From: Neoconidiobolus thromboides FSU 785
Taxonomy: Eukaryota; Fungi; Entomophthoromycota
DNA length: 64,000 nt
Assembly: GCA_025603075.1 (NCBI GenBank)
Contig: MU626324.1
Span: 40,611-104,610, forward strand
Direction of reading: 5' to 3'
Each line of letters opens with the position of its first letter. The stretch's first letter is position 1. Below the pieces are notes generated by a model. The model had not been told where the DNA came from. It searched no databases and saw only the letters and a program-made list of their open reading frames with translations. Made by a program: the position numbers and the translations under genes. Below are positions 2,466 through 63,440 of the stretch, one piece after another.

Positions 2466-2562
2466 AAATGGGGTATTTTTTCCAGTTTCATCACTTTTTC
2501 CTTTCTTTAAGTACTATTTAAGCGGAAAAATTCTTAGTAAAGTTCTTAATATGTCCCCAAAT
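2466..2562 (-). mobile_element. Family-1 MITE-like element, copy 1 (one end partly deleted)
   Basis: ATGGGGTATTTTTT...AAGTACTATTTAAGCGGAAAAATTCTTAGTAAAG...TCCCCAAAT matches the reverse of the family consensus. Confidence 0.7.
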
Positions 2563-3276
2563 TTTAAATTTAATTTTTTTATATTTTGGCTAACAAATAA
2601 GATAATGATAAGTTAATAACTTTAGCTAAAATAGGCTAATAAGTTTGCTTTTGAAATGCACCTGAATTATTTATTATATAAGTTATCTTTATTATATAAA
2701 TATCAAAATTGTTTTGAAAGTGCATCAAGTTATTTTTGAGGTCACATACTTGAATCTATCTTCAACCTTTGTTTCTTACTACCAAATCTTTATAAGTAAT
2801 GAATAGTAGTTACTGAAAGGGCACTCTTTTTTAATAAGATTTTGTCAAATTAGTTTTTTTAAATTCATTTAAAAAAGCATTTAAAATAATAGTCTTTTTA
2901 AATTTTAATCCAAAATTGTCATTTTTTATTTTAAATTAATATTGTTATGAGGAAAAAAGCTAGGAACTCGAAAATTTAAAATAATAAAGCTCATGTCTAA
3001 TTTTATTATATTCGAAGTTTAAAAGTTTTCAAAATGTTTCTAAAGAATTATAAAAAATTTATTTAAGCTTTTGATTTATCTATGTTATCAAATAATTTAA
3101 AAAAATAAAATCAAAAAATCAATCTTTTGATTTTATATCTACAAAAAAGAAAATAAAACTTTGGAAATTTATTTATATTATTCTTAATATCTCTTCAATA
3201 TAAAAAACAAAAGTTATAAAAACAAGAAGTAAAAAAGGAAAAGGCAATAAAGTTAACTAAAAGAGTACGATTGAAA

Positions 3277-6200
3277 ATGGATCCCAAAACAGAAGAAAAT
3301 GAGCGGCTAAATACATTGTATGCTGTGACTAGTTTTTGCAATAAATTACCTACTCAAACAAGTCACGAAGAGGCCAAGGCAGTAGTGATGCAACTAGTAA
3401 AGCTGATACTAAAGCAGCAAGGTGATTTTATTGTTGTTAAATATTAATAAAATTAAACACTTTTTTAGCCACGAATTCTACTAACTTGTTAACGTCTATC
3501 AATCTTATACAATATCTAGTCGTAAATCATGCCAAAAAATTGGTGGATATTGTGATTTATCCAGACTTCAATAATGTGGGCAACAAAGTGGATATAGAGC
3601 CAGATAGCAGGTTTGAGGACAATGAATATGATGAGGATGACTTAACAATCACACCATCACAGAATATCATAATTGAAACTTTCATGACACATAAATTTTT
3701 ACACTCCGAAGACGAAATACCAAACTGTAATGTTGATTACTTAATCACTTATTGTATTTTGAGATTATTTTCTAAAGAAGAGTTAGATAATAAATGTTTG
3801 GAAATATCCAATGAAACATTGAAAAATATTATTAGTGTCTATTATAAAGATTTCGAGTTTACCCATGCCTATATTTATTTTACCCACCTTTGGGCATGTT
3901 TGAAATGTAATCATCTTTATTATTTTTAAGTTTGAGATTAATCTTTTAGGTACTGTTGTGTGTATTTTAAATGAAACGTTCGACCAAGAAAAACTCAAAC
4001 CCCGAGACATATATTCAGCTGAAATCGATAAATTGACAGAGCGTTTTTATAGTGATATACCCCTTAAAAATGCAGTACTTAAGGTAATTTTTTAAATCAG
4101 CTATTTTTATTGAATCTCATCTTTTTAGAAATTCAAATTTTGTCTTCAACCGGAAATAACAAGTATTAAAAATGCATTAGCTTATTTGAAAAGACTTGCT
4201 AAAATTATATTATACATGATGGAGCAATATGAAGGGCTATCAAACTACTGCCCAAGGATGCTTGACTTCTTTATCCAATTGTATCAAGATAGAGATGATA
4301 CTGAAATCTTAGAGGTAATAGTTTGTCAATAATTGCTCACAATGGATTTACTTCTTTATAATAGGTTTTAATCTTAATGAGCAATGTTGACGAATTTGAT
4401 TCATGGGTTCGCCCTTATAGCAAAACTCTACAGCAGAACATTTTTGAATCAGTGCTATTCTATGCCTCTAATTCACTTAGAAACCAAATTACTTTGTAAG
4501 TTTGTTATTTTGTTTATTTATCATACTAAATTTTTGTAAAGAACAGAAAAGGAAAAAGAAAATCTTATAAGGCAGGAAAGAATTTTTAGCAGAGCTCTAC
4601 CTCTTGCTTCACGATCCAGCTATTCCCACGGACAAACTAACTTTCCCAGTACTGATTATTTACATAATCTTGTAACAACTTTTTATCATTCACCTCCTTA
4701 TGATGTTGCCATTCTAGTAAGTTTCGATAGATATATCTAAGCTAATATTAAATTTTTATTAGATATCATTATGCAAGTATTTATGCAAGTATTTAAGTTC
4801 TTTTAGTGATTACCACTTAATTGAAAAGTTAGGATATAACTTTAAATTCCCAACAATTCATTCACAGCTATTTAATTTGATGGGATTAAACCAACTTATT
4901 CAGTATTATTGGAAAGAAGAAGTTTTTGATGGAGAATTTTATTTTGATATTAACCCAGTAAGTTTATTTTTATTATAAAAGCTATTCAATTTTTGACTTT
5001 TTTGTAATAGGATATTTTAGAGCATAACAATGAAGATGGCTATACAGATTCAGAACTAGAAGCTGAAGAAATGGGGTAGCTAAAAGTTTTTGTATTTATT
5101 CAAATAATTAATAGGATTCAATTCATTAGGATTACAAAGAAGTTCAAGATATCACATAACAAAGAAACACTCATCAGTAGCACAAAGCCCCGTAAAATAG
5201 GTAGAGGAAGATTCTCAGTGACAGAAAATCTCGATATAATAGATGAAATGATAATCGATGGTAGCCAGAGAAGTAATTTTGAAGCTACAGTATTGGGCTT
5301 TTTAAGTTTGTCTTTTAAAGCATGCTATCAAAAAATTACTAAAGAGGGTAGTTTGGATTGCAGCGATTTTCTTGCTTTTAGTGAGCTATTCACTACTTTT
5401 GGCACTTCACGTTTTAAAGATTATGCTTTCATCTTGGAAAAGTTCCTTGACCTTGCTATGGATGCCATAAAGCTATGGATTGAAGTAAATTGATCTATGT
5501 GAATGAATAATTATTTAATGAGCTTAACTTTAGGAAATTAGTAATGACATTGAATCTTTTTGCTTAAAAAATGTAGTCAGTTTTATTAGAGATATTTCTA
5601 TCTTAGCTACTATTAATACAAAATACACAGGTAATTTTATTAATACAAAGATACAAAGGATTAATTTTTATAGGAGAAAATGCTATTAAGTTTTATAAGA
5701 TTTTTTCAGCAGTATGGAGCTATGAACTAGAAACTTCTAATATCGACTTTAACATTGAAAATCGAGAAGTAGATTCAAAAATGATTGAAATGCGTGATGA
5801 ATATATTATTGAGCTTGGAAACATATTAGGTGGATACAAAATTGATTTGAGTAAGGTAAAAAATGACCAAACAGTTTATAACTCTATGTTACTTGAAACA
5901 TTAAAAGGCTTTTCTTGCTTGAAAATTGATAATTTCTCCTTTATTAAAGGATATGCTTTATTGGTATCCCTTGCAAAACCAGAGTCAGACGAACTTAACA
6001 TTGAAGCTCGTCGATTAAGCCCCATTTTTATTCAAACTAGTCCCGATAAATCAAAAAAAAAACTTTTCCAAGGGATTTTGGAATTCTTGAAGTAAATTAA
6101 TACATTAAATCTTTACTTTTTTAATCATTGTACACTAGGCCTGTACCTATAGATGATGTTCATAATGCTGACGAGATTAATTATGGTTCAGTTAGAACTT

Positions 6201-9200
6201 TTGGTATGTTATTTTGCGCCTATTCTGGCTTATGCGAAAATCCAAGTAGTGTATTTGATGGTGACTCAAACATTATGTTTTGTAATTTGTGCGATGTTGT
6301 ATCTTCAAATAACCCTCATAGAAATTCTAAGGTAAAAAATACATTAAGTAGGAAGCATCTAATAGATAAGGAGCTCTTAAAAAGTTTTGATTGGAGTGTC
6401 TACTTAACATATCTAGATAGTAGAAATGCTTCTTTAATAAGAGAATTATGTATGAATAGTTTCTATAAAATCATTTCTCATTCCCCATCAATTGATCTTA
6501 GCAAAGACATTCCTGTGATCATCAATGTTTGTTTTAACTTTTTAAAGGATGCTAGTCATAAAGTAAGACATATAGCTAACTTAATATTAGTAAAGACTGT
6601 AGAATCTGAAAATAAGGCTGAGATTAAAGAAATTAATTATCGGATAGTATTTGATAAAATTGAAGCAAGCTTTATTGATTCTAGTAAATTCGCAAGTAGA
6701 AATATTCTTTATTCATTAATAGATGAGCTTGCGTTTAATGCACCCGAATTTATATTAGCTAAAATTATAGATTTACTAATCAAATTACTTATGGACGCTA
6801 ATGTTATAGATGCAGCGATGATCAGTAATCGAATTCAAAATATTGAAAGGAATAAAAAAACTTGTCTTAAAGAGATTTTTGAGCCACTGTGGGATTATTT
6901 GGTTCCGACCATATTAATTGATTTAGAAAAGGGACGTCGTGCTATTAAAAAGTTAGCACATTTAATGGGATTTTATGTTAGTGATTTAGCTCAAATAATA
7001 CATCCCTTTATTTTGCCACAAATTATGTTGAATTGTGATACCAAGAGTTTAGATATTTTGTGTTTGGTTAGTGCTCAAGGCCCAAATGAAAATACAGAAG
7101 TAAATTTAGATTCGACTGAAATTGCTAGGTTGAGGGCTAGTATATGTTTAGCCAATTTAGATAAAATTTTGTCTATTTTACTTCTTGACTTGAAGAATAA
7201 TGATGAGCCTATGAGTTTGTTTCTACAGATTGTATCTGAGGAAGATAAACCTTTTTCACTTGCCAAAGCGATAAAGTACTGCACTGATGATTTGGTAGAA
7301 AATTTAGTGTTTGAGCTCGGAAGTCCAGATAATATAAGGAAGAAAGAAGTAAAGAAAATTTTAAGTTAGCTATATTTTATACTTATTTGATTTAGGCTCT
7401 TGACGCTTTAAGTTTAGTAGCTAATGCTCTAGATGAATCCAACGGTCAAAATGAAGCAAAAAGTGAAGTAAAAGACTTGTTAGCATCAAAATTCATGGGA
7501 TTTGTTTCAAGGTTTAATATCAAATTGATGAATAAAACAGATAATACAATAAACTCTATTCATCTAAAAATGATCACTGGTGTAGATCGAGTCATTTCAA
7601 TAATTGATTCAAGGGTAGATGAGTATGTAACCCAAATACAGGCATTTTTAAGAACTATATTGAGATTTAGAAAGCACCTCACCATTGCTTTAGAAGTTTG
7701 GAAAAATTACATATTTACTCTTGATGAAAGGTCTTTAGCTTTGGTACTAAATGTAGCAGTAGTAACCTTGACAGAGATTTATAGTAAACTTTCAAAAAAG
7801 CAAAAAAGAATCGTAATAGAGATATTGGATGACATATTTAAAAGGTGCTCGGAGGATCGTTCGCTCAATGATTTATCTTTCAAAAAAGAAGATTACTTGA
7901 AATGTATAGGGGAACTTAGTTTACTTCCAGAGAATATTGAAGAGTTCTCAAAGTACAACAAAAAGATTAAAAAACTAAATTCTACAAAAAACATTGAAGA
8001 GCTCGCTAATCTCCTAATCAGTAATACGAATCACCTAAATAGAGTAGGAAGAGAAAGAGCATTAGAGAAGCTTTATGAGTTTCTATGTGATAACCAAGAT
8101 GTGATATCAAGTTGGGCAATCGAAGTTCCAACAAATACAGTTATTGATAATGCTATTAAACAGCTGATGGACATAATTCACAAACATAAAGAGCAAGATG
8201 ATGAAAAAACCAGATATTTAGTTGCTAAATGCTTTGGGGCTATTGGAGCTATTGATCCAAATTGTTTCGAATTTAAACACACACCAAAAAGAAAATTAAT
8301 GTTGTTCGATCCTGATTCTAAAGATTCATGCATGAAACTTGCCGCAGATCTAATAAGTAGTAAATTAGTTGAGTTATACCACAAATCGGAAAATTACTCT
8401 GTTCAAATATCGATATCATACTGTTTGCAGGAGTTAATTTCTTTATGTTCATTTGATGATCCAGATATGGATAGTAAGGAGTATAATACAGATAAAACAA
8501 TATCACCTAGACTTTGGTTTAGCTTTCCACAATCCACAAGAGAAACACTTCAAGCTTTTACGAGAACTAGACTATCAACTTGGCCTTCAACCGCAGAAAA
8601 ACTTGTATATCCTTATTATAGCCCAGGATTAAATTTCCAAACATGGGTCAAGTCATGGACCATGGATCTCATTGATTATATAGAAGGGGAGTATTCTAGT
8701 CAGCTTTTCAAGCCTTGTTATTATTCAGCGAGTAGCTTTATTGACATTTCGCTCTTTTTATTACCATATATTATATTGACATTGATTGTTAGAAACAATA
8801 TAAATATAAAAGTGGGACTTTCAAAGGAATTTAACGCTATTTTAGATATATGGGAAGAAGCCGATAAGTTTAAAGATAAAAAGCTTGATCCACAGCCAAT
8901 CCATTTAATTATTAATATTATTGAAGGCTTGAGTCAAATCAAAATGGATATGGAAATACATTTATTTGAGATGTATAATGGTGTATATGGGGATAGTCTT
9001 GGTATGATTAAAAAAAGTATAGAAAAAGATGAAGCTTATTCTAGGTTAAAGAACTTTATCAAAGATATATCGCCATTCAAATTGGCAAAAGCGGCTATTA
9101 ATTCAAACTGTTATTATGAGGCTTCGAAATATTTAGAGCAATGCATTAAAATTGAAGAAGCTAAAAATAACTCAAATCAGAAAGTACTAGGTGATTTGAA

Positions 9201-12255: not shown

Positions 12256-12375
12256 AATTAAGTCAAAATAAAACTATTGATCTTATGTAAGTGAAATTGT
12301 TTGTTTATTTTGTTATAAAATAGGTTCGATTTTAATATCTTTTTACCTTATATCTAACTATACTGTTTGCTAAAC

Positions 12376-12482
12376 ATGTGGGGGTATATTTTTTCACTTA
12401 AGAATTTTACTAGTAATTTTTCCACTCAAATGGTACTTAAAAAATGAAAAAAATAATGAAACCAAAAAAAACATCCCCATAT
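12376..12482 (+). mobile_element. Family-1 MITE-like element, copy 2
   Basis: ATGTGGGGGTATATTTTTT...TTTTCCACTCAAATGGTACTTAA...AAAACATCCCCATAT, 120 bp after the ATR stop. Confidence 0.8.
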
Positions 12483-13004
12483 AGTGCCCAAAATACTGTC
12501 AATGGCTGTGATGATGAGATTACTGATGGTTACCGTATTTGAACCATTATTAAACAATAAAAGTGTTATTAATGAATCTCCAATCAAAAGTGAGTCCAAA
12601 AAAACCACAAACATATATAATATTATAGGTCGTTAGTCATTTTATTTTCTTTATGAAATATGTTTTTTATAGTTTATTTTAAATCTAAAACTCGGAATTT
12701 TTTCTATGAATATAAAACAAACTAGAAATAAATATAATATTAAAAGGCAGTAATTAATATGGTGATCTCTTATTTAATTTCATTTATTTGGTTGTTTTTG
12801 AATCTATTGAGTGGAAATTTTATTAATAGAGTCTTTAAACAAAAAAAAGATGTGCATGTGTTTTGAGTTAGCTGTATTTTAGTTATGATTCTTTTGAACT
12901 AAAATATGATTTGTAACTTATTTTAAAATATCATTAATATAAAATAGAGAAGTATGAATTTAATAGTAACTGAAATTGAAAGGTATCCCTTGTAGCAAGA
13001 ATAG

Positions 13005-13632: not shown

Positions 13633-13692
13633 TGTTAAAAAATGAAAATGAAATTTTACAAAATTAGAAATAAAATGTAATCTCATCTAAAA

Positions 13693-19587: not shown

Positions 19588-19693
19588 ATATGGGGATGTA
19601 TTTTTGTGTTTAAGAGTTTTACTGACAATCTTTCCACTCAAATAGTGCTTAAAAAATGGAAAAGTAATGAAATCGAAAAAAACACCCCCATAT
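19588..19693 (+). mobile_element. Family-1 MITE-like element, copy 3
   Basis: Near-consensus: ATATGGGGATGTATTTTTGTGTTTAAGAG...TTTCCACTCAAATAGTGCTTAAAAAATGGAAAAG...AAAACACCCCCATAT. Confidence 0.85.
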
Positions 19694-19722: not shown

Positions 19723-19828
19723 ATATGGGGATGTATTTTTTTGTTTAAGAATCTTACTACAATTTTTCCACTCAAATAGTGCTTAAAAAAAGAAAGATAA
19801 TGAAACTAAAAAAAATAGCCCCCTATAT
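19723..19828 (+). mobile_element. Family-1 MITE-like element, copy 4
   Basis: ATATGGGGATGTATTTTT...CCACTCAAATAGTGCTTAA...AGCCCCCTATAT, 29 bp after copy 3. Confidence 0.85.
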
Positions 19829-19904: not shown

Positions 19905-20004
19905 CAGAGGTGTTGTTTCTGGTTTCATCACTTTTTTCATTTCTTAAGTGCTATTTGAGTGGAAAATTTTTTAGTAAAATTTTGAATAAACACATTATCT
20001 CCAT
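19905..20004 (-). mobile_element. Family-1 MITE-like element, copy 5 (eroded ends)
   Basis: Internal TTTCATCACTTTTTTCATTTCTTAAGTGCTATTTGAGTGGAAAA...TAGTAAAATT matches the reverse consensus. Confidence 0.7.
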
Positions 20005-20201: not shown

Positions 20202-20308
20202 CTATGGGAGTGTTTTTTTTGACTTCATTATTTTTTCCATTTTTTAAGCGCTATTCAAGCGGAAAATTTGTTAGTAAAATTCTTAAGCACAAAAATACAT
20301 CCCCATAT
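20202..20308 (-). mobile_element. Family-1 MITE-like element, copy 6
   Basis: TATGGGAGTGTTTTTT...TTAAGCGCTATTCAAGCGGAAAA...ATACATCCCCATAT; retains both internal CpGs. Confidence 0.85.
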
Positions 20309-25179: not shown

Positions 25180-25280
25180 ATATGGGGATGTATTTTTTTG
25201 TTTAAAAATTTTACTGGTAGCCTTTACACTTAAATGATGCTTAAAAGTGGAAAAATGGTGAAATTAAAAAACACTCATAT
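25180..25280 (+). mobile_element. Family-1 MITE-like element, copy 7
   Basis: ATATGGGGATGTATTTTTTTG...GCTTAAAAGTGGAAAAATGGTGAAA...ACACTCATAT; starts 74 bp upstream of the ARL2 ATG. Confidence 0.8.
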
Positions 25281-26869
25281 GGAAATTTACAAAATTTGTG
25301 TTTGTTAATAACCAAAATGACGATTAAGGAAACGTATATCTTATAATAATAATGATACTTTAAGTTGGAGTATATCAGTAAAATATTAATCAACTACAAA
25401 GTATGTTAGTATAATGACTAATGAATAGTGGAATAAAACCCCCCTATAATATCAGCTAGTTTCATATTAGCTGATTGCTATAGTGAACTAAGACTATTTA
25501 ATTATAAAAAGCTTCAAGGTTCAAGATGAGATCACCTTCTTATAAATGATTCGCTGATGCACTTCTCTCTTTTCACACTTTCGATCAAACTCTTATTATG
25601 AAACTTATTTATGAGGGATTTGATTTTATAGCATTAAACTTTCTGACATAAATGAACCTATGTCTCACCTGTATCTTCATACGTTTTCTTTACCTAAGCT
25701 AATTTATGAAAATCTGGATTGAAATATGGGGGTGTGATCTTTTTAGAACTAAATAGGATAGAATATCAGCAAGCACCTCCTCAGATTCAGTTAATTTCCT
25801 TATTTAGTCTACTTCTTCCAACTTCGTTCCCTTTCTAGCTTTATGATCTAAATAAAACAATTAAGAGCTTTGCTCTTTAAAGCTATATCTATAAAAATCT
25901 GAAAGGAGTTTATTGTAATTTTATATTGTAATATAGAGGTTTTTTATATATCAAAATAACAGCAATAGTAATAACCGCTATCAATGACAATAAGGATATG
26001 TCACTTTCTTATAGAGTTCTATTAGTCCAAAATTGTATATATAATCCAGTATTTTAATAGAATTTTAATATTTTTACAAAAATTATAAGACATAAAAGTT
26101 GCACATAGTACTATTTGGATTTTGTCATACTATCATATTATATGAATATATATAAAGTATAGATGGCTAATGGCAGCTTTCCTGTTGCATCTACAAGAAA
26201 TCCTCGATAAAGATGGAAAAGTCAACTTTACGATGATTGTAAAAAGACATCTCTTTGATTCAGTTGGACAATCCCATGTTCTCCGCAGCAAGTAGACCCA
26301 TGGAACAGTTATTATCTTCCAGTCTCTAATTTCATATCCAACTTAGCTTAAACCACTGTCTCCATTTGAGACTAAGACTCTTTATCAGGATTTTAGTAAT
26401 CTAAAGTGAAATCCTTGCTTAATTTGGTGTCCCCCATCATATATATTAGGCAAGGAGTACTGAGTAGGCGCGCTGATACGGTTTATATTGAAGTAATAGT
26501 AAGGAAGTTAGCTAAAAACTTATTGCTTAAGCTAAAGGCTTTTTTATGCTAGATTCTCCTCATAAATATCGTATTTTCTAGTTCCAAGAGGGTCTTTCAT
26601 TTACGCTTAAATATAAAGATTCTTAACTTAGTTAATATTAAAAAGACATGGTTACATATCTTCATTGCTTAGGCTGCAATTATTAAATTGATACTTTACA
26701 AATAAAATGACGTCGCATTCAATTTTATTGCCAAAATTGGATTTTTTACTACACAGCTACTTTATCACCAATTTAAAAAACAGTGCTTCTAATATTACTA
26801 ATTCAAGAGCTTTATAAATTATAGTAATATCATATAAATTCTGATCTTCCTTAGTATTTTTAATTTGGA

Positions 26870-28216
26870 ATGCGACTAAAATTCGATGATTTACCAGTTT
26901 TACTACTAGAAGAAGTGTTCGAATGTCTGAATCCAATTGAGTTATTTGACATTCAATATTTAAACAGATATTTATATCAAGTTATCAATAAAGTCATCAA
27001 CTACAACTCCATCTATTCAATGTATGACAATACTATTTATGGACTCTACCAAGAAAGGTTCATCAAAGAAAATGGGAAGTTAATTAGACACTTAAATTTA
27101 AGTGAGAAGAAACTAGAATTGATTAACTATTGTCCTAATCTAACTTCTATAAAGTTTGGTGAGTTTATCCGCAGTGACTATGATGGGGATTACAATTGTA
27201 AGATTACTATGAAGTTACCAAAATTGAAAAAGCTGATATTATCGACTTATGTAAATTCCATTAAATTATTAGGATTATTCAGTTGTTGTTTGGACCAAAT
27301 TGAGTTCATTGAGGTGAATGAGTTTAGTAAATATGATGGAGAAGTTAAAAAGGTAATTAAATATTTCAACGCGGATGTAGTGAAAAAAATTGAGCTATAC
27401 TATGGTGGTAACTTAAGTCTCGATGGCCTCGACACAATCAAAGCCAAATTTACAAAATTGAAAATGCTGCGTTTATTAGCTAACAATAATGTTTTTAATT
27501 CTACAAAACTTGATCCAGCCATAAGCTTTGTTTCTCATTTAAAGTTAGAAATAGAAGGCAATCTAACCGTGAATTTTGATATCAATAGCCTTGGTAACTT
27601 ACAAAATTTAAGAAGTTTAAAGTTGTTGGATAATTCAGGTAGTCAATTTAATAAAAATAAAAAAAACAGCAATAACATAACATTCATTGAAAGCAAAAAT
27701 ATTACTGTTTCAGGATATTTGGATTTTAAAGTCGCAATGTTTTATGATATGGCTACATTATCTGGTTTAAGGGAACTACGCATTAATAATATATCATCAA
27801 AGCTATTTAATATCATTCCATTATTGCCAAATATCCAACAGCTTGATATTAAAGCCTTAGAAGTTAATGTTAAAAAAACGTTTCGCAAGCTTGATTCAAA
27901 AGGCAATAACATTTATAGATCAAACTATAAGCATCATTTATTAAATGAGAATAGCCGACTTAAATGTAAGTTTATAAAACAAATTAAAATTAACTTCTCG
28001 CACCTGTTTTTGGATGACTTTATCTGTTTTATATCTTTTTTTCCAAACCTTGAGATACTCAAAGTTGTAAATTTTAATTTAAAAGGCATAAAATCAGCTA
28101 TTGAGTATAAACTTAGTACTCCATTGTTGCTTATTGCTCCAATACCGTATGTTATAGACTCAACGCCTTATATTGCGTTAGAAAAGATGCCACTGCTCGA
28201 TTGGATAAAGATTTGA
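26870..28216 (+). CDS. F-box/LRR-like protein, 448 aa, intronless
   Basis: N-terminal F-box-like DDLPVLLLEEVFECLNPIELFDIQYLNRYLY, followed by LRR-like units (CPNLTSIKF, LPKLKKLIL, LQNLRSLKL, LPNIQQLDI, FPNLEILKV). Confidence 0.7.
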   Translation: MRLKFDDLPVLLLEEVFECLNPIELFDIQYLNRYLYQVINKVINYNSIYSMYDNTIYGLYQERFIKENGKLIRHLNLSEKKLELINYCPNLTSIKFGEFIRSDYDGDYNCKITMKLPKLKKLILSTYVNSIKLLGLFSCCLDQIEFIEVNEFSKYDGEVKKVIKYFNADVVKKIELYYGGNLSLDGLDTIKAKFTKLKMLRLLANNNVFNSTKLDPAISFVSHLKLEIEGNLTVNFDINSLGNLQNLRSLKLLDNSGSQFNKNKKNSNNITFIESKNITVSGYLDFKVAMFYDMATLSGLRELRINNISSKLFNIIPLLPNIQQLDIKALEVNVKKTFRKLDSKGNNIYRSNYKHHLLNENSRLKCKFIKQIKINFSHLFLDDFICFISFFPNLEILKVVNFNLKGIKSAIEYKLSTPLLLIAPIPYVIDSTPYIALEKMPLLDWIKI

Positions 28217-28334: not shown

Positions 28335-28440
28335 ATATAGTGATGTTTTTTTGATTTCATCACTTTTTCTATCTTTTAAGTGCTATTTGAGCAGAAAGAT
28401 TGTTAATAAAATTCTTAAATAAAAAAATACATCCCAATAT
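28335..28440 (-). mobile_element. Family-1 MITE-like element, copy 8
   Basis: ATATAGTGATGTTTTTT...TAAGTGCTATTTGAGCAGAAAG...ATACATCCCAATAT. Confidence 0.8.
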
Positions 28441-28817: not shown

Positions 28818-30176
28818 TTACTTTAAAAGATCAAGCGGCAAAGCCCGAATCTCCTGATGTTTTCTTTTATACTCCTTAATCAATTCAAATAATGCATCTA
28901 AATTAATTTGATTCAACTTTTGATTGTTGTATATAAATTCATTTTTTTCGTCAAAAGAAGGTAAATATTTCAACAATGCAAGTTCTTCTTGAATCTGCCA
29001 CTTAATTTGCATAATACTTTTATATAATTCAATATGTTCAAAATGCAATCTATCAAAATCCCTCTTCAATTCTTCTTTATCAATGAAGCTCTTGTTTAAC
29101 GTTGGAGTTGAATGATTAACTGGTGAAGGAGCAACTTCAACATTTTTGGCTCTTGTTCCATTCTCGTTAGTGTTATTAATATTGATAGTCTGCTTATTAT
29201 TCTTTATATAATCTTTGACTGACATTATACTTTCTTCAACTGCTAGCTCAGTATTAATATTGATGTTTTCATTTATAATAGAAGCCTGAGGCTCATAAAT
29301 AGGACTGTGAGCTGAAAATGGTCTATTCCTTGGGATGTTAGTTTCAATTTGTCGACTATTAATTGAAGTTTCATCATTAGTATTATACATTGTCCTATTT
29401 GTACTTAAAGCCTCTTGAGTTTCACCTGTGCCATGCAAAAAACAAGTTAGATGCTTAAAATATTCAGAATTTGGTATAATGGCTTGTTCTCCAAGAGCAC
29501 TAAAGCAATTCGTAGCTGCCATTTTTCTATCTGAAGGCGAATAATTAAACCAATTAATAACATCTACTTGTCTATAATATTCATCTTTTAATAGCCATAC
29601 ATTATTTTGTTTTCTTGCAACTTCATTCAAGATAGATTTGAGTCTTTGTCTTGGTATAGGTATACTTTCAACTAAAGTATCAATGGTAGCTGGTGTAAGT
29701 GCTAAACTATGAATAACTTTTCGCCTAAAATCCTCTAATTCCTCTTCAATAGATGGACTTGGCTCTCTTCTTAATCTAGACCTTTGATTTGTATCATGGG
29801 TAATTATTGGTTGATTATTATGACTTATACCATGGGCAGTCACCGATAAATTATTATGTTTTGTCCTTTTATTATTATTATTGGGATTTCTTACAACTAA
29901 ATCTTGACGAACAATATAAGTTGGTAATTCTGGTTTATAAAATGCCGCTTCATTATTACCATGAATAAATAAGTTACTGTTTTTTACTGGTCTACGACGT
30001 TGAATTTTATAGACTATATTATCTACCATAAACTCTAAATTAGCTTCATTTAATTTCGCTGTTTTGCCATCATTTCTTATATCATCAAGTAATTTTTCGG
30101 GTATTATTAATTTATAACGCTCCTTTTCCTTTTCTCTATTACTTTCTTTAGTTACCCTTGCAACATACTGTTCCAT
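28818..30176 (-). CDS. ELL-like RNA polymerase II elongation factor, intronless
   Basis: Central RRKVIHSLALTP...LKSILNEVARK..NVWLLKDEYYRQVDVINWFNYSPSDRK resembles the ELL winged-helix region. C-terminal EELKRDFDRLHFEHIELY...EYKRKHQEI resembles the occludin/ELL domain. Confidence 0.65.
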   Translation of the reverse strand: MEQYVARVTKESNREKEKERYKLIIPEKLLDDIRNDGKTAKLNEANLEFMVDNIVYKIQRRRPVKNSNLFIHGNNEAAFYKPELPTYIVRQDLVVRNPNNNNKRTKHNNLSVTAHGISHNNQPIITHDTNQRSRLRREPSPSIEEELEDFRRKVIHSLALTPATIDTLVESIPIPRQRLKSILNEVARKQNNVWLLKDEYYRQVDVINWFNYSPSDRKMAATNCFSALGEQAIIPNSEYFKHLTCFLHGTGETQEALSTNRTMYNTNDETSINSRQIETNIPRNRPFSAHSPIYEPQASIINENININTELAVEESIMSVKDYIKNNKQTININNTNENGTRAKNVEVAPSPVNHSTPTLNKSFIDKEELKRDFDRLHFEHIELYKSIMQIKWQIQEELALLKYLPSFDEKNEFIYNNQKLNQINLDALFELIKEYKRKHQEIRALPLDLLK

Positions 30177-30283
30177 CTTTTACTACCCTTTGTTTTTATC
30201 AATTGAGATTTTATAAAAAATTTATGAAAATGTTTAATCTTATTTCTTTAGTTATTTCTTTAAACTCGAGTGCAGTTTTTTTC

Positions 30284-30292
30284 AACCAATCA
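30284..30292 (+). promoter_or_regulatory. CCAAT box (AACCAATCA) upstream of the ELL-like gene
   Basis: NF-Y-type match ~110 bp upstream of the ATG. Confidence 0.3.
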
Positions 30293-30328
30293 ACTCTTCA
30301 TTTAGATTTCTGAGTGATAAATACTTTG

Positions 30329-30433
30329 ATATGGGAGTGTTTTTTTTGGCTTCATTACTTTTTCCATTTTTAAACACTATTTGAGTGGAAAAATTGTTAG
30401 TAAATTCTTAAACATAAAAATACATCCCCATAT
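30329..30433 (-). mobile_element. Family-1 MITE-like element, copy 9
   Basis: ATATGGGAGTGTTTTTT...CACTATTTGAGTGGAAAAATTGTTAGTAAA...ATACATCCCCATAT. Confidence 0.85.
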
Positions 30434-33957: not shown

Positions 33958-34061
33958 ATATAGGGATATATTTTTTTGTTTAAAATTTTACTAACAATCT
34001 TTTCACTTAAATAGTACTTAAAAAATAGAAAAGTAATGAAACCAAAAAAACACCCCCATAT
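33958..34061 (+). mobile_element. Family-1 MITE-like element, copy 10
   Basis: ATATAGGGATATATTTTT...TTTTCACTTAAATAGTACTTAA...AAAACACCCCCATAT. Confidence 0.8.
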
Positions 34062-34322: not shown

Positions 34323-34426
34323 GTATAGGGATTTTTTTTAGTTTCATCACTTCTTCCATCCTTAAGTGCTATATAAGTGGAAAGATTGTTAGTAAAATTC
34401 TTAAACAAAAAAAAACACCCCCATAT
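34323..34426 (-). mobile_element. Family-1 MITE-like element, copy 11
   Basis: TATAGGGATTTTTT...TAAGTGCTATATAAGTGGAAAGATTGTTAGTAAAATTCTTAA...ACACCCCCATAT. Confidence 0.8.
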
Positions 34427-36265: not shown

Positions 36266-36371
36266 ATATGAGGATGTATTTTTGTGTTTAAGAATTTTAC
36301 TAACAAATTTTCCACTCAAATAGTGCTTAAAAAACGGAAAAATAATGAAATCAAAAAAAACAGCCCCATAT
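36266..36371 (+). mobile_element. Family-1 MITE-like element, copy 12
   Basis: ATATGAGGATGTATTTTTGTG...TTTTCCACTCAAATAGTGCTTAAAAAACGGAAAA...CAGCCCCATAT. Confidence 0.85.
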
Positions 36372-42027: not shown

Positions 42028-42128
42028 ATATGGGGATGTATTTTTGTATTTAAGAATTTTACTAACAACTTTTCCGCTTATAGCGCTTAAAAATGGAAAA
42101 AATGAAGTCAAAAAAAACACTCCCATAT
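42028..42128 (+). mobile_element. Family-1 MITE-like element, copy 13
   Basis: ATATGGGGATGTATTTTTG...TTTTCCGCTTATAGCGCTTAAAAATGGAAAA...ACACTCCCATAT; small internal deletion, both CpGs retained. Confidence 0.85.
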
Positions 42129-53801: not shown

Positions 53802-54085
53802 GATTATTGTATTATTTTTGATTTAACAAAAGTAGTAAAAGCAATGATATTAGGAATTGATTGTTGATTCCTTTTTATCAATGATTAGGTATTACTCACT
53901 ATTTAGTGGCATCCCTTAGTCAAGTTAGTAGAAGATCTTCTATATTTGGTAAATCTACTACATTAATAACGTTTTTCATGTGAAATGTTAATTTGTGGAT
54001 TTATCTAATTTTGCAAACTATTTTTTTGTTTTTAAGAACCTCATAATAAGCATTGTTTGATTAAATACACAACTGTATTTCAAAT

Positions 54086-55329: not shown

Positions 55330-56707
55330 TTAATATGACATAGAATTAGATTGAATGGCCTTAATAGCGCTTTGCATTTGTGCATTAGAATCTGAGAAGA
55401 ATAAAAGCTCATCCTTAGTTTCTCCTTTGTCAATACTTAAGTGAAATGAATTTGGAATCAAAGTATCTATACTGCATTCCTTAACATATACTTTTCCACT
55501 ACCTAAATCTAAGCATGAAATTGGGTATTTTTCCTATATAAATCATTAATACTGGAATAAAATCATAGTTAGTACTAATTATTTACAATTGGATCTCTGT
55601 AAAAATAAATAGTTTCACCACGTATTACATACCAACGTCTTTTCCAAAACTAAATTTACTTTTAGTATTAATATAAATCCTTATAAAGTTATATTACATA
55701 AGACCCATCACCTTGTACGGTTATATAATCCATAATTTGAGATGCCTATAAAATTAATTAGTATATTTAATTGTTTTCCATTGATTCTTACATCTTCATC
55801 TGGGAGATTAGTAAACTGCAAGCGTACAGATTGTCTCTTTTGCCAAGCTTCTTGAATTTTTCTTTTAGCTTCTTCTTCTAAATTGATTTTAGCTGGAAGT
55901 TCTTTTGGCAATGTAGACTCTTCTTCAAAAACTGGGGTGGATTGATTAAATGCTGAAGAATTAGGATTAAATAATATATTAGAATCTTCAGTATCATGAT
56001 CCCCAGCAGATAAAATAGTTTCTGAAGGGTATATGTCAGATGGATTGCTTTCCGATGGGTAAGCACCTGTAATTGTACCTGCTGAAGATGCTATAATATC
56101 GGCTAAATTTCCATTCTCCTTTGGTTCGGAAATTGCGTTTCCAGCTTTATTTTTAATTGCATTTTCTACTGCTTCGACCGTTAAATTGTCCAAGTTGGTA
56201 ATATGTAAACTAACATCAATTTGCTAATTTTATAGTTAATTCATATATAAAAATACAATCGTTAGTTTTACTTCAAAAAAAGCTGATACAGAACGTCCAT
56301 GAACTACAGTCCTAGCTAATTAATTCTATTTAAATAAAGTAGTTTGTGATTAAAATGATACTACCTCTACGGACACCACTATACAAAAAGTATTTAATAA
56401 AAGTTAACGAAGCAATAAAAAGAATACCTTAAGTTTTCATCAACATATAAAACATAAACTAAATGGTCGTTATATAAAAGTAAGGCATAATGAATAGAAT
56501 CAATTAAATTTTTTTTCAAATCCTCAACATCACCTAAACCTTTAGAATACAAGAATAATTTTTCCCTGGTGTCACCATAACCTAAAACAAACCTAAATAG
56601 TTATGATAAAAATATTTTAAAATTAAAATTAGTTACCAACTGATTTCACGATTTAAAATTTTTTGGTAGGACTCTGCGATTGAAGCTTCACTTAAATCAC
56701 AACTCAT
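55330..56707 (-). CDS. ADF-H (drebrin/Abp1/coactosin-type) plus C-terminal PH-domain protein; multi-exon
   Basis: Spliced N-terminus MSCDLSEASIAESYQKILNREISW|FVLGYGDTREKLFLYSKGLGDVE...ARTVVHGRSVSAF. C-terminal DYITVQGDGSY|FWKRRWYVIRGETIYFYRDP...LLFFSDSNAQMQSAIKAI is PH-like. Confidence 0.7.
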
Positions 56708-57151
56708 TTTCTTTTATTACGTATTATTATTATTATTATAAAAAAGTAAAACAAAGCAAATTTATTGTTCTGCCTTTTAATCAATTTTAAGCCATTTTGT
56801 AAATTCATAGAACAACCGATTAGCTTTGATTGGTTTGATTTTTAAGAAATAAGAAACTAATTATAAAAAATCATCATTTTGTTATTATCATCATTATGAA
56901 AAAAATAACAGCTGCTATATACGAAACTAATGTATATTAACATATCTAACAACCAGGAAATAACACATTATCCCCTTAAAAAAGCTTCAAAACAAAACAA
57001 AATTAACTAACTTCTACACAGCATATTCTACTATTCTGATATGAAATAAAATTCAATTTCTCTAAATTTAGTTTATCTATTAAACGTTTAAAAAATATAA
57101 CATCTTCAATAATAACAAAAGTCAAACTATATGTAAAATTATTTTAATAGC

Positions 57152-57421
57152 TTAATGGTCAGCCTTTTCATGAGCACCAGCTTTAGAGTTATAATAAGCG
57201 TTTTTGGCATTACCCCAAGCGTAAACGGAGTAGCCTAAAGCGAAAGCTGGAGCAATGTAAGGTACTTGAGCACCGAAACGTTTTACCATACCAAAAAAGC
57301 TTTTTTTGAAATAACCAGCATAAGCTCTTTGCTGGAAAGGTGATAAAGAATAGGTAACAATTCCCTTTTGAGTTGGTCCACCCATATATCCCCAGTGTCC
57401 TTGATATTTTCCTCCGGCCAT
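57152..57421 (-). CDS. QCR8: Cytochrome b-c1 complex subunit 8
   Basis: Y.GHWGYMGGPTQKGIVTYSLSPFQQRAYAG...QVPYIAPAF..GY..YAWG...YYNSKAG. Confidence 0.92.
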   Translation of the reverse strand: MAGGKYQGHWGYMGGPTQKGIVTYSLSPFQQRAYAGYFKKSFFGMVKRFGAQVPYIAPAFALGYSVYAWGNAKNAYYNSKAGAHEKADH

Positions 57422-57907
57422 TTTTATTGATTTATGTTTAAACTTCTAATTAATACATTATTATATTTTTTCTTATTTTGTTGTTTAAGGTTACCTAAAA
57501 TTTAATTAATTTAAAAAATGTTTTCTAGATTTTAATCTAATCACACGCTTAAATCATATCTTTAAGTAAATTGATTCTTGGACTTTAACTGGTTTAATTG
57601 AAATCCCATAAATTTCAGCTAAGCTTATCGGTCCATTCATTTATAGTAAATTGTTTTATTTCTTTCAATAATAAGTACTAATGAGAAAAACATTAACGCT
57701 ATCATTTATATTATTTTATTCGCTTCTTAAATTAGATTCGACTTTAAAGAATTTTTTTTGTTAAAAGGGAGAGCGTCGTTTTTAACTTGAAGCATGTTCA
57801 TCTTTTGACTAGCTTAAAATCTGAACAAGTTACTAGCAAAACTAAAAATGAAAAAACATACTTTGTGATTATAGTTTTTTCATCACTACATAATTTAAAT
57901 TCTTTGT

Positions 57908-57916
57908 GGCCAATCA
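57908..57916 (+). promoter_or_regulatory. CCAAT box (GGCCAATCA) upstream of NEDD8
   Basis: NF-Y consensus match 77 bp upstream of the ATG. Confidence 0.35.
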
Positions 57917-57992
57917 AAGTTGTTCCAATTTTACGTAAAATCTGAATTTGCTGTATTTAAAAGCTTTTTTACAATAATACAGTCATAATAAA

Positions 57993-58470
57993 ATGTTAAT
58001 CAAAATCAAAGTAAGTTAGCTACATGTTAATATTTCTAATACTAATTAAAAACTTAGACTTTAACAGGAAGAGAGGTATTGGCTAAATATATTTTTTGTT
58101 GATTAATTTTTAAAATTTAAAAGTTTGAATTTGATATTGAACCTGATGATCCAGTAAGTTTAATTTAAACGTATAAATTAATGTTATTGATTTATCTAAA
58201 AAAGATCATGCGCATCAAAGAGAGATTGGAGGAAAAAGAAGGTATCCCTCCAGCACAACAAAGGTAAAACAAGTTAAATTCAAATTAAACAGTGATTAAT
58301 TCCATTATTTAGATTAATTTTTGGTGGTAAACAAATGTAAGATTAAAGTTAGGTAAAAAAAGTCATATAATAACATTGAATTTAGGGCTGATGATAAACC
58401 TGCTTCCTCTTACGGAATTGAAGGTGGCTCAGTGCTTCATTTAGTTTTAGCTTTACGTGGCGGAATTTAA
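57993..58470 (+). CDS. NEDD8: NEDD8/Rub1 ubiquitin-like protein; 6 exons (absent from the ORF track)
   Basis: Spliced MLIKIK|TLTGRE|FEFDIEPDDP|IMRIKERLEEKEGIPPAQQR|LIFGGKQM|ADDKPASSYGIEGGSVLHLVLALRGGI*. LALRGG (Ala72) separates it from ubiquitin. Confidence 0.92.
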
Positions 58471-59196
58471 GCAAATAATTAAATTAGATGTTTTCTACCT
58501 ACATAACTTTTATTTCGACTGTTTGGTATAGGTTTGGATGTCATATAATTTTTATTAATAAATTATATTTGGTACAACTTTATGATCACCAGCTGTTAGT
58601 TGTACTTTAAATGTAATTTAGTAACAGCTCTTTAGTTTTTTATAATTTAGAATCTTTGAAAAAAAGTAACTAGAGATTATTTATTTTGACAGAAAACGAA
58701 TTTTTTATAACTTCCATCAAAGTGTATGCCCGCTTTGTAAACATAAACATTTATCATTAAAGTAACTCCTTCAGTATATCTTTTACATTACTTACAGTTT
58801 ACCTATAAAAACAATAATGGTTAGTTTTTGAGATTATGAGTCTTAAGCTTAACATGGTTGGTTTAGCTCCTTTTAGTTCTCAACGTAAGAGCTTATAATA
58901 TACAATGCTAATATATTTTGATTTAAAACCATTTGAGTCTTAATTTATAATGATTTTGACTATATTTAGAGTTCTTTTTGAAAGTAATACACAAAAATAT
59001 ATCATTGTTTCGTTTGATCCATCTTGTTTGCTGTTGTTAAAATGACTTTATAAATGGTATAGTTTGTATTGAAACATTGTGTGATATGAACTATTTTGAG
59101 TTCTAAAAGAGAGGATAATTTATGCTGGTTAGGGAGTACACATTTGTCATAGATATTAGTGCTGGGTCACTTAGCTAACAGTTCAAAGTTATTGTA

Positions 59197-59275
59197 CTCG
59201 GTCTGTTTCGGATTAACTGTCACAATTTTAGCACTTTTAGCTGAAAATATAATGGCTAATATGAAGCAGACCGAG
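59197..59275. mobile_element. Candidate family-2 Stowaway/Tc1-mariner-type MITE, 79 bp
   Basis: TA|CTCGGTCTGTTTCGGATTA...TAATATGAAGCAGACCGAG|TA: imperfect ~20-bp TIR, TA on both sides, GC-rich ends. Confidence 0.5.
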
Positions 59276-59429
59276 TACTAGACTATCTATCATTCAAAAT
59301 CTAGATGATAAATTGGTTGGTTAAAAAAATCATAGTCGAATTTTAAATAAAATTGGCTATAAGTTATAACTAAACATTTTTGTGGAGTTTGGTTAAAAAT
59401 TGGATTTTTAATAATGGGAATGGTATAAT

Positions 59430-61036
59430 ATGGAAGGTTACTCTGTAAGGATAAAGGAAAAAAGACTTTGAGAGCGGGAAAAGGAGTATTATAAGTTGGT
59501 AGTGCCGGAAAGATTACTTAATAAAATCAAAGGTGATGATAAATCAGCTAAATTGAATGGAACTGATTTACAATTTTTGATTTATAAACCAATTCATAAA
59601 GTCAAACGTAGTCAATCTTCAAAAAATAATAACCTATTTCTTCATCAGAATAGCCAAGATGCTTTTTACAAATCTGATATCCAAATTTCAACTGTTTGCG
59701 AAGATGTGATTAGACGAACTTGCTGAAAATCGAATAAAAGGGTCAAATATTTTGATCAACTAATAATTAATTATAATTTAAATGATAGATCAATCTTCAG
59801 AGATATGAATAGCCCATCTTCGGACGTGCTTTTGAAAGACAATAAGCGAGCAGCTATTTATAAATTAGGACTTTCACTAACCATAATTGATACCTTGCTT
59901 TTAACTATACCCATCCAAAAGCCTAGACTCAGGTCTATCTTAGAACAAGTCGCAGAAAGACACGATGACTTATGGATGTTGAAAATGAAGCCTATAGATA
60001 AGTGGATATTGTTTATTGGTCTAATTATTTACCTTCTGAGCGAAAGATGGTGGCCATAAATTATTTTAATGTGCTTGGTGAATTAGTTATGATCCTTAAA
60101 TCTGAATATTTTAGTCATCTGACTCCTTTAAAGATTAGTATAGGCGAGATTCAAGGAACTATATGTACAAGCCCTATAGTGCAAAATCCAAGTTCATAGC
60201 TCATGAATTCAAGCAGAACGATGCAAAATATAGTTTCCCAAATCACAAGTAGAACGACGCAAATTATAGACCAATAAAGCATGACTACCAGAGAGTAATG
60301 CAAAATATGAACTCGCGAATTGCTGGAACCAATAGGGCAGTACGAAACACAGCTCAAAAAGTAGCAAATATTCTTAGTAAGAATATACCAGGTAAAGCAG
60401 CTTTACTAGTACATAGACCGCTTTTACCTCATAATCTTTCCAATAACCAATGAGCTTCCAATAGGCCTATGAATAACACAAATGTTCAACCTGCGAATAA
60501 TATCCATAGTAATCCATCAGTTAATATCATTGTTTAAGAGCGCAGACAATTGACTCCTTGCAATCCTAGCTATGGCCCTGTAACTCTTAACATATGCGAA
60601 AGAATAAATAGTAATACCAAACCTGGCCCTAATGAAGATCTAATACTCGTTATAAATCGTATGCAAAGTAATGAAGGAATTATTTATATTAGTGGTAGTA
60701 ATAGAAAAAAACCCGAGAAATATTACAGTACACCAATTGCTTGTGTGCCTCCAATGGAAAAGAAAAATTTCGCTAATAATGAAGAGTTGGCTAAAGAGTT
60801 TAATAGATTACATTGGGCATACCGAGTTATATAATATAGTTATTAGTTTTAATGAGAAATCCAGGAGGAACTTGTATTGCTACAATATCTCACATCTATT
60901 TAAGAGAAGGAAGAACTAGTTAGTTTTGATTTAAAGCTTAATAAGGTTAATTTAAGTCAGTTATTTGAGCTGATTGAAGAATAAAAAAAAGAAATACACA
61001 CAGATTCATGCTTTATCACTTGAACTTTTAAAGTAA
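59430..61036 (+). pseudogene. Disrupted paralog of the ELL-like gene at 28818-30176
   Basis: Collinear matches along the whole length: LVVPERLL/LIIPEKLL, NNLFLHQNSQDAFYK/SNLFIHGNNEAAFYK, IDTLLLTIPIQKPRLRSILEQVA/IDTLVESIPIPRQRLKSILNEVA, WSNYLPSERKM/WFNYSPSDRKM, EELAKEFNRLH/EELKRDFDRLH, HALSLELLK*/RALPLDLLK*. In-frame TGA at 59469 and several frameshifts. Confidence 0.85.
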
Positions 61037-61063
61037 GCATGATATTTGATTAATTAATTTAGA

Positions 61064-61168
61064 ATATGGAGCTGTTTTTTTGTTTCATAACTTTTTCTAT
61101 TTTTTAAGCGCTATTTGAGTGGAGAGATTATTAGTAAAATTATTAAGCAAAAAAATACATTCCCATAT
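61064..61168 (-). mobile_element. Family-1 MITE-like element, copy 14
   Basis: ATATGGAGCTGTTTTTT...TAAGCGCTATTTGAGTGGAG...ATACATTCCCATAT, 27 bp after the pseudogene stop. Confidence 0.8.
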
Positions 61169-61460
61169 TAACGATTTATTTTAGGAAAAATTTAAATAAA
61201 ACTTTTAGTATATCATATAATATATTAACAGTAAGGAATAATTAAATATTTATCAATATTAAATAAGCTTTTAAAGGAGCTTTTAACATTCAAGAAATCA
61301 CTTTTATTATATTAGCAATTTACCTTAGTAAATCAAATAAAGCTTTCAAGTAATATAGCATAAAATTTTAGTAGCAAGAAATAAATATTGATCGGTATCA
61401 AATACGAAATCATGGTTTCTTATATAAACTAACAGTTTTATAATGTACAAAAGTTTGACA

Positions 61461-61574
61461 TAAGCACTATTTGAGCGGAAAATTTGTTAGTGAAATTCTT
61501 AAAAACAAAAATACATCCCCATAATAATAATAATTTAAAAAATGGAAAAAATAGTGAAGTAAAAAAAACACTCC
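61461..61574. mobile_element. Family-1 element, rearranged copy 15 (left ~63 nt inverted relative to right ~40 nt)
   Basis: 61461-61523 is the reverse complement of the left part. After an AAT repeat, 61535-61574 is the right part in forward orientation. Confidence 0.7.
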
Positions 61575-61944
61575 TTTATTGTTATTTTATTATAATTTCT
61601 AGTTAGTACAAATTATTATGTTATTATCTACTTCATCATTAAAAATCGTCATTAGGATAGAGTATTATTTTAATATTCGTCATTTTCGAAAATAGCAATA
61701 CTTGAGAAAGCTTTAAACAAATTAAGCTAGTCATATTTTTTTAACATTGTACTTAGTAAAAGGCTAATTATTTTGTTACTACAATAATCTGTATCAACCT
61801 CTCCAAGCCAGACAAGCTTATAGAAGCCAAAAGTAAATATTTCTTATAACATTTGTCTTTTAATAGTACATCTGTTTAGCAATTTTCTATTGAAGATATT
61901 GGGTATTTTTATACTTGGTTTAAGAAATACCAAAATCCACTCAA

Positions 61945-62037
61945 TGTGTCTTTTTTGGTTTCATTACCTTTTCCTTTTTTTAGCGCTGTTGAGCGTAAAA
62001 AGGAAGTAAATTTAAACAAAAAAAAATACATTTCCAG
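61945..62037 (-). mobile_element. Family-1 element, degenerate copy 16
   Basis: TGTGTCTTTTTTGGTTTCATTACCTTTTCC...TAGCGCTGTTGAGCGTAAAA...AAAAAATACATTTCCA. Confidence 0.6.
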
Positions 62038-63333
62038 TTTTTTTAAAAGTTTCTGTAACTTGAACCATAGAGTGCGACTGATTTTATAAAACCATACTCA
62101 AAGTCAGTTGTTGATTCAAAACTCATATGCTAATCAGCCCCTATATTCTTATAAAATACCTTGCTTTTTTAAAAACGATGATTATGAAGCTATTTATATC
62201 ATTTTGATATAGTTACTTAATATTTTTATGACTTTATTAAATAAAACACTTTAGTAAATGGTATGAGTATAATCATTAGCGGAATTATCACCAAACCAGA
62301 TAAGTTTAACAGTGAATTTTTTCAAATCAGTCCTGTTGATAATAAAGATAGCAGTAATTCCCGCTACTATAAAATAAACAAAACTTTCATTGTAATCTTT
62401 TTTTACCCCCATATTATTATTGTTATTCGAAATATAGAAGCTCATCACCCACCTTGCACATGATATGTGTTAAGAAATAAGTCTTGTTTTCTATTATTTA
62501 ATAGGATTTTATAGAAAAATCTTGAGGTAAGCTAACTAAGTTTGAAACTAGAACTAAAATAAGATCCTAAAATGTATTAATATTTATCCTTTCAAATTAG
62601 CTATTCAAATAGTATATATATGTATATTTATTTATATTTGAACATTTGTCTATTCCAATATTTTATATATGTAATTAGCATTTAATGTTTACTTTAAATA
62701 ATAATCGAGCTATACTACTTTCTATATAATCTCATCAAAAATATTTTTAGTAATCAGATTTATTAGTTAATGATAAATCTAATATTTATTGGTTTAAAAC
62801 TATATCAGGATGATTTTGAGTGAATGAATATAAAAACTCTGACCTTTCATCATCTGTTCACCTTTTGATGCCTTTACTCATCATTTTTACAACGTACTAT
62901 TACATAATATAAGCCATTTAGAATCTGGTACAAATAATTACAAAGTAAAGGGATTTATAAATTAATACTTGTACGTTTATAACATTTAATAAATATTGTT
63001 TGTATTAGCTTTAAAAAGTTATATATATATAGTAAAATATCATTGCCTTAGTCTTTTAAAAGGTTTGATTAATTATAGTTTTGAATTTAGCGACATGAAT
63101 GTCATTAAAAAATAGAGAGTTGATAAAAAGTTCAACTATTTACTTTAGTGCAAATCCGTTTATTAAATTTATTAGCTAGCAATTAATATCACGTTCCAAA
63201 TAGTATCATCAGATAATCCGAGGCTTAGTTAACTTAGTAGCACCAATGTTTACATAATAGAATTTGGTATGACCTTTGAAATAGGATTATTGTCAGCTAT
63301 TTGAAAACAAGATTTAAGCTATCAGATAGTTAT

Positions 63334-63440
63334 ATATGGGGGTGTTTTTTTTTGACTTCGTTACTTTTCCATCTTTTAAGCACTATTTGAGTGGGAAAAC
63401 TGTTAGCAAAATTCTTAAACACAAAAATAAATCCCCACAT
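63334..63440 (-). mobile_element. Family-1 MITE-like element, copy 17
   Basis: ATATGGGGGTGTTTTTT...TAAGCACTATTTGAGTGGGAAAACTGTTAGCAAAATTCTTAA...ATCCCCACAT. Confidence 0.85.

Follow-up and report, generated by a model that had tools for sequence, protein, structure and literature searches.

A high-copy family of short non-coding repeats in Neoconidiobolus thromboides and its probable relationship to a Sola2 transposon

A 64,000-bp stretch of the genome of the insect-pathogenic fungus Neoconidiobolus thromboides FSU 785 (contig MU626324.1, positions 40,611 to 104,610; hereafter, the window) contains numerous copies of a short repeat bounded by terminal inverted repeats (TIRs). These repeats very probably constitute a single family of non-coding MITEs (miniature inverted-repeat transposable elements) of the Sola2 type, 97–99 bp in length, which derives from a Sola2 transposon of approximately 2.46 kb, or is a close cousin of such a derivative. 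An initial sequence-only reading of the window had interpreted the repeats as a non-autonomous DNA transposon (MITE), and this interpretation is borne out by the TIRs, the target-site duplications, the paralogous empty sites, and the lack of coding capacity. The same reading had also suggested an undescribed system, which does not stand, given that the homology of the partner transposase and the AWWT duplication place the MITE within the known Sola2 superfamily.

Element boundaries, target-site duplication and empty sites

The boundaries of the element were determined in 92 non-redundant full copies, taken from 20 further regions of the genome and from loci added later. The MITE starts with GGGGATGT and ends in ACAYCCCC, resulting in a GGGG...CCCC structure. 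Of the 92 copies, 75 have a length of 97–99 bp, which is too short for any open reading frame (ORF), and the coding capacity is nil. The TIRs are formed by the pairing of GGGGATGT with the 3' ACAYCCCC, and imperfect pairing extends to approximately 24 bp.

The 4 bp on the two sides of the element are identical in 69 of the 92 full copies, whereas the adjoining outer 4 bp, which serve as a control, are identical in none of the 92. Most of these matched flanks are ATAT (57 of 69), and the 12 other pairs are ATTT (four), AAAT (three), GTAT (two), ATGT, TAAT, and ATAC, with one of the 12 being the same locus read on the opposite strand. The variant base of the non-ATAT flanks is repeated on the far side as a direct, not an inverted, repeat, which identifies the outer ATAT as a target-site duplication of 4 bp, located outside the TIR. 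The consensus of approximately 105 bp with ATAT termini, as originally described, was thus essentially right, except that the ATAT is the duplicated target and the element itself has 97–99 bp. Beyond the duplication, the target presents an A at position -3 (68%) and a T at position +3 (80%), which forms a palindromic context, and TTAA does not occur among the 69 matched flanks.

Filled and empty versions of the same site are found in three paralogous pairs, referred to here as A1, A3, and A4. Pair A1 is located in a repeat of 464 bp, in which three copies have the empty sequence TTA-ATAG-TAT, while the copy in L011 has the filled sequence TTA-ATAT-element-ATAT-TAT. The other two pairs are located in the 2.46-kb element. 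The empty site of A3 consists of a single ATTT (L041 and L042), and the filled site of ATTT-element-ATTT (L043), while A4 has a single ATAT in L041 and L043, and ATAT-element-ATAT in L036 and L037. In all three pairs, the filled site is longer than the empty one by precisely one GGGG...CCCC element and 4 bp, which is the signature of cut-and-paste insertion, and this 4-bp gain rules out the duplication of TA (Tc1/mariner) or TTAA (piggyBac). The sequence-only reading had regarded the lack of both empty sites and an autonomous partner as an argument against a mobile element; paralogous empty sites and a decayed partner were found.

In two copies of the Sola2 element, a MITE is found at the same ATAT site and in the same orientation (L036:523-634 and L037:900-1011). 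The two nested MITEs differ at approximately 13 of 98 positions, and their flanks at approximately 4 of 75. This shared site could be explained either by a hot spot for insertion or by the inheritance of a nested insertion.

The partner element and its transposase

The window contains no transposase detectable by blastn or tblastn, as had been noted from the sequence, and the only pieces of the partner element found there are MITE-like ends. A search for a long element with the same termini and a transposase had been recommended with the initial reading, and a decayed Sola2-type element of approximately 2.46 kb is present elsewhere in the genome (L041:6436-8896), with other copies in L042, L043, and L047-L051. 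The A end of this element reads GGGGTTGTCTGAATTAGTTTCA, and its B end reads GGGGYTGTCCTAATTGGTTTCA, with GGGGYTGTC termini, flanked by ATAT-type 4-mers. When everything beyond the shared octamer is shuffled, the 5' end of the MITE matches the B end (z = 2.3), and its 3' end matches the A end (z = 3.0), with crosswise z values of approximately 0. The first 78 bp of the partner can also be aligned by BLAST with the MITE at positions 12401-12478 of the window (73% identity over 79 bp, E 7e-5), and the subterminal similarity between the partner and the MITE is 65–73%. In its layout, the MITE corresponds to an internal-deletion derivative from the partner lineage, although the sampled 2.46-kb element is a relative, rather than the demonstrated direct parent.

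Both the MITEs and a second element of approximately 464 bp are repeatedly nested within the 2.46-kb element. A 559-bp repeat adjacent to a MITE in L001 was considered as a possible composite bracketed by two MITEs, and was rejected, as it belongs to the 5' region of the 2.46-kb Sola2 element, with flanking MITEs missing from most of its copies.

The partner encodes a single protein, on the minus strand of L041. Fragments of this protein were found at 275 places in a first look at the genome, most of them with stops or frameshifts; 150 of these 275 candidates were scored, about ten copies were readable, and all the copies inspected are decayed. A frame of 566 amino acids in L047 was rejected as an intact transposase, given that it crosses a block of N, which makes its intactness unreadable. 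This block (L047:1998-2489) interrupts what is otherwise the best-preserved copy of the Sola2 transposase (G000:C11).

Nothing significant was found in Pfam for three pieces of the partner transposase ORF, and a word-based protein search recovered only three hypothetical proteins of N. thromboides FSU 785 and one Logan protein with 34% identity. With thresholds of E <= 1e-3 and E <= 1e-30, an exhaustive profile search returned 1306 and 82 cluster representatives, respectively. One of the profile matches, P0096 (9e-30), corresponds to the protein PPL_04538 of Heterostelium album PN500 (synonym, Polysphondylium pallidum), a species for which Bao and Jurka (2013) described Sola2-Fanzor elements with 4-bp AWWT duplications (PMC3627910). 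Six short strings of the published Sola2_PPa-1 transposase, checked against the text of the supplement, are all present in P0096, and in the same order (PMC3627910). The N. thromboides ORF (L051:1297-2430) matches P0096 in BLASTP with 28% identity over 333 amino acids (E 1e-26), and P0013 (BB558_007265 of Smittium angustum) with 33% identity over 306 amino acids (E 2e-45).

Ten residues are invariant in an alignment of 25 members with 22–33% identity (D174, K176, S223, D257, F262, H293, G294, K295, D299, and F302), and a near-invariant TDxCxxC motif is found upstream of them. The AlphaFold model of the partner transposase (predicted local distance difference test, pLDDT, 82.7; predicted template modelling score, pTM, 0.71) has an RNase H-like order of strands and helices, that is, strands 1, 2, and 3, a helix, strand 4, a helix, and strand 5. 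In this model, strand 1 bears D174, while D257 follows strand 4, and D299 opens the helix that comes after strand 5. The best solved structures recovered by Foldseek were IS21 IstA, retroviral integrases, and Mos1, all of them weak matches (E ~3e-4 or worse), as would be expected of a superfamily without a solved structure. The partner transposase is thus predicted to carry a DDD triad (D174, D257, and D299) on an RNase H-like fold. The homology with P0096 and Sola2_PPa-1, together with the D-D-D residues and the AWWT duplication, assign the partner element to Sola2, and the MITE with it, by association. The probable assignment to Sola2, rather than Sola1 or Sola3, is based on the AWWT target and on how strongly the transposase matches a published Sola2 protein, and it was presumably this transposase lineage that moved the MITE.

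In the mechanism that is very probable on this basis, a cut-and-paste DDD transposase would cut AT-rich AWWT targets, mostly ATAT, with a stagger of 4 bp, and the repair of this cut would duplicate the 4 bp that flank the MITE. The MITE would retain only the two ends bound by such a transposase, and would be moved in trans by a Sola2-type enzyme, as a short derivative, or the close cousin of a derivative, of the approximately 2.46-kb Sola2 transposon, which is represented by a few hundred decayed copies.

Some of the observations weigh against this interpretation. The mobility of the MITE is deduced from paralogous sites, and beyond the first eight bases, its ends are only some 65–73% similar to those of the 2.46-kb element; a closer parent may exist, or may have been lost. 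In addition, no intact transposase frame was seen among the approximately ten readable copies, in which the longest clean frames have 377–415 of approximately 560 amino acids.

The presence of a TA in the center of the commonest flank, ATAT, would fit a Stowaway-like MITE of the Tc1/mariner superfamily, inserted at TA, with the ATAT made up of a TA duplication and terminal bases. The matched flanks ATTT, AAAT, and ATGT nevertheless have no TA where it would be required, direct-repeat covariation is found at positions 1 and 3 of the 4-mer, the gain at the empty sites is 4 bp rather than 2 bp, and the partner transposase is Sola2-like, and not of the DD34E/D type, all of which makes this explanation extremely improbable. 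Mobilization by another superfamily that duplicates 4 bp (piggyBac, Kolobok, Ginger, or Chapaev), with a coincidental resemblance to the Sola2 ends, is somewhat less improbable, although still very unlikely. The subterminal likeness to the Sola2 element is modest (z = 2.3–3.0), and the genome was not scanned for piggyBac, Ginger, or CACTA transposases. However, piggyBac and Kolobok duplicate TTAA, which is absent from the 69 matched flanks, and the terminal octamer, the flank consensus, and the 78-bp end match (E 7e-5) all link the MITE to the Sola2 element, in which MITEs are repeatedly nested, and which has the same flanks. The AWWT target is also the published preference of Sola2 (PMC3627910).

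The ends of the MITE can pair, and its copies are found near genes, which might also be expected of the gene of a structured non-coding RNA, or of a hairpin repeat with a regulatory role that has spread without transposition. This is contradicted by the complete lack of Rfam matches in the window, by folding energies no better than those of shuffled sequences (z = -0.8, -1.8, +0.5, and +0.2), and by the exact difference of the element plus 4 bp between the filled and empty paralogous sites, a signature of transposition, and there is hardly any probability left for an RNA of this type. A further idea, which builds on the Sola2-type MITE family itself, is that part of the swarm has been co-opted as cis-regulatory or transcript-end modules, or as sources of small-RNA hairpins, or that the Sola2 lineage was transferred horizontally into the Entomophthoromycotina. 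Co-option is raised by the occurrence of the MITE almost exclusively in gene-flanking spacers, at approximately one copy per 3–4 kb, and this broader idea is considered unlikely. The family may also be a major source of promoter and terminator sequence, as the initial reading had suggested from the location of the copies.

Copies in the window, abundance and associated repeats

The window has a G+C content of 23–32%, and encodes eukaryotic proteins such as an ATR kinase, an indoleamine 2,3-dioxygenase, and an amino-acid transporter. It is part of contig 67 of the 24.6-Mb assembly that was searched, which comprises 799 contigs. A 21-nt terminal probe (three mismatches or fewer) produced 15 matches in the window, in comparison with 0.00 expected from shuffled sequences, and repeat finding grouped the copies in overlapping families of 95–115 nt. 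An nhmmer profile made from six copies of the window returned 20 matches, one of which is a reverse-strand echo of the copy at 12375-12486. The 19 matches retained represent approximately 18 loci, between positions 2470 and 63441, with nine on the plus and ten on the minus strand, which confirms the dense family in both orientations described initially. Both termini are present in 13 of these 19 copies (element of 93–99 bp), four are degenerate, and two are half copies. The copies located by nhmmer are as follows (position, strand, description, and left/right flanks):

2469..2558, minus: degenerate MITE copy, ~90 bp; E 1.1e-14
12380..12478, plus: full MITE copy, 99 bp; ATGT/ATAT; alignable in addition with the initial 78 bp of the 2.46-kb Sola2 element
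12761..12855, minus: strongly degenerate MITE copy; E 3e-4
19592..19689, plus: full MITE copy, 98 bp; ATAT/ATAT; representative copy, 94% identical to the family consensus
19727..19822, plus: full MITE copy, 96 bp; ATAT/CTAT
19909..19999, minus: degenerate MITE copy, both termini eroded; E 5.8e-15
20206..20304, minus: full MITE copy, 99 bp; ATAT/ATAG
25184..25278, plus: MITE copy, 95 bp, eroded 3' terminus
28339..28436, minus: full MITE copy, 98 bp; ATAT/ATAT; 118 bp off the end of open frame 26864-28213
30333..30429, minus: full MITE copy, 97 bp; ATAT/ATAT; 150 bp off open frame 28821-30179
33962..34057, plus: full MITE copy, 96 bp; ATAT/ATAT
34327..34422, minus: full MITE copy, 96 bp; ATAT/ATAC
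36270..36367, plus: full MITE copy, 98 bp; ATAT/ATAT
42032..42124, plus: MITE copy, 93 bp, small internal deletion; ATAT/ATAT
61068..61164, minus: full MITE copy, 97 bp; ATAT/ATAT
61476..61520, minus: 5' half of MITE (model positions 7-69), terminus facing right
61542..61575, plus: 3' half of MITE (model positions 67-115), ~20 bp from the 5' half, in inside-out order
61944..62035, minus: degenerate MITE copy; E 6e-11
63338..63436, minus: full MITE copy, 99 bp; ATGT/ATAT

The side-by-side halves at 61476-61575 could be a rearranged or a doubly truncated copy. In the window, stop-to-stop open frames of at least 80 codons are neither overlapped nor adjoined by any copy, and the nearest frame of this size is 118–2418 bp away, whereas the probability that a random 105-bp segment touches one is p = 0.50. 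The original description of the copies as all intergenic holds for open frames of this size, with short exons and introns falling below this resolution. This distribution is explained most simply by the frequency of ATAT in AT-rich spacers and by selection against insertions in genes.

The heptamer TACTAAC is found at positions 29-35 of the MITE consensus (for example, at 19620-19626 of the window). This is the yeast-type branch-point heptamer, and its presence is probably due to chance in AT-rich DNA. Two stretches of approximately 930 bp on opposite strands of the window (29399-30323 and 59284-60170) are 64% identical, and one of them overlaps an ELL-like ORF (28818-30176); these stretches are probably paralogous genes.

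The search of the 24.6-Mb genome produced at least 3229 first-look candidates, and the density of the MITE is 0.30 per kb in the window (nhmmer) and approximately 0.29 per kb in the 20 sampled regions, once the targeted copy is removed. The thousands of copies predicted from the window are thus found in the genome, and extrapolation from this sample, which is not unbiased, indicates a total of roughly 7000 copies or fragments. The copies have a median identity of 89% with the family consensus (range 67–96%), and a mean pairwise identity of 82%, while the closest non-self match of the representative copy is 96%. The burst was not very recent, given the divergence from the consensus and a best non-self match of only 96%. 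The amplification of the family would appear to be over, or nearly so, given the median of 89% (maximum 96%) and the fact that none of the transposase frames seen is intact.

The second non-coding TIR element, of approximately 464 bp, has the termini TGTGAAAT...ATTTCACA, and is often nested in the Sola2 element. Its copies are:

L010:2645-3109
L019:3623-4084
L003:96-559
L040:533-996 and 1419-1882
L043:4596-5058

Two copies of this element have clean 4-bp duplications, GAGA and CTTA. In L040, the flanks of two inverted copies are exchanged (AAAC/GAAG), as though an inversion had taken place between these copies. Telomere repeats of the TTAGGG type (L003:1-95, the start of contig C51) adjoin the 464-bp element at the end of this contig.

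Comparison with known systems

No name for this MITE family was found in the searchable literature, in agreement with the initial impression, nor was any paper found with its terminal 14-mer, and a metagenome scan for a 33-nt pattern of the MITE had zero matches. The Sola superfamily is cited in PMC5751038 and PMC3627910, with the latter describing the Sola2-Fanzor elements of dictyostelids (DFa and PPa). A 2017 survey of fungal DNA transposons recorded Sola2 once, in Aspergillus flavus (PMC5751038), and a comparative study of the Entomophthorales, in which N. thromboides has 13.5% repeats, mentions neither Sola nor MITEs (PMC11105155).

The present analysis provides a clean description, including the ends, target, and partner, of the small repeat that is most abundant in the genome of N. 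thromboides. The records of Sola2 in fungi, which are very few, are thus extended to an entomophthoralean species, and probably to Smittium. Masking or annotation of the family is advisable in the modeling of genes, promoters, and 3' ends in this genome, and its insertions could be used to mark strains. The understanding of how transposons work is left unchanged by these results.

The N. thromboides MITE resembles the Stowaway and Tourist MITEs in its length of approximately 100 bp, its TIRs, its lack of coding sequence, its thousands of copies, the supply of the transposase in trans, and its enrichment in gene-flanking AT-rich DNA. The Stowaway and Tourist families duplicate TA (Tc1/mariner) or TWA (PIF/Harbinger), however, whereas the duplication of the N. 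thromboides MITE has 4 bp (AWWT), and its link is to a Sola2 enzyme.

The family shares short imperfect TIRs with the published Sola2 elements, as well as the 4-bp AWWT duplication, which in those elements includes ATAT, AAAT, and ATTT (PMC3627910). The Sola2_PPa-1 transposase is homologous with that of the partner (E 1e-26), and the two have in common the D-D-D triad and the colinear blocks TDxCxxC, DFK[EQ]N, LNHxS, WxDxxxHF, and HGKSxxDxHF. In contrast with the dictyostelid Sola2-Fanzor elements, the host here is an entomophthoralean fungus, the element has approximately 2.46 kb and GGGG...CCCC termini, its transposase has approximately 560 amino acids rather than at least 888, and no Fanzor passenger was seen in it. 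The very high-copy 99-bp MITE of N. thromboides is also unreported in the description of the dictyostelid elements. The protein BB558_007265 (P0013) of Smittium angustum, a harpellalean gut fungus, is listed in the database only as a hypothetical protein, and is closer to the N. thromboides ORF than the dictyostelid protein, which suggests that the Sola2 lineage may be present in other early-diverging fungi, or be common to the Zoopagomycota.

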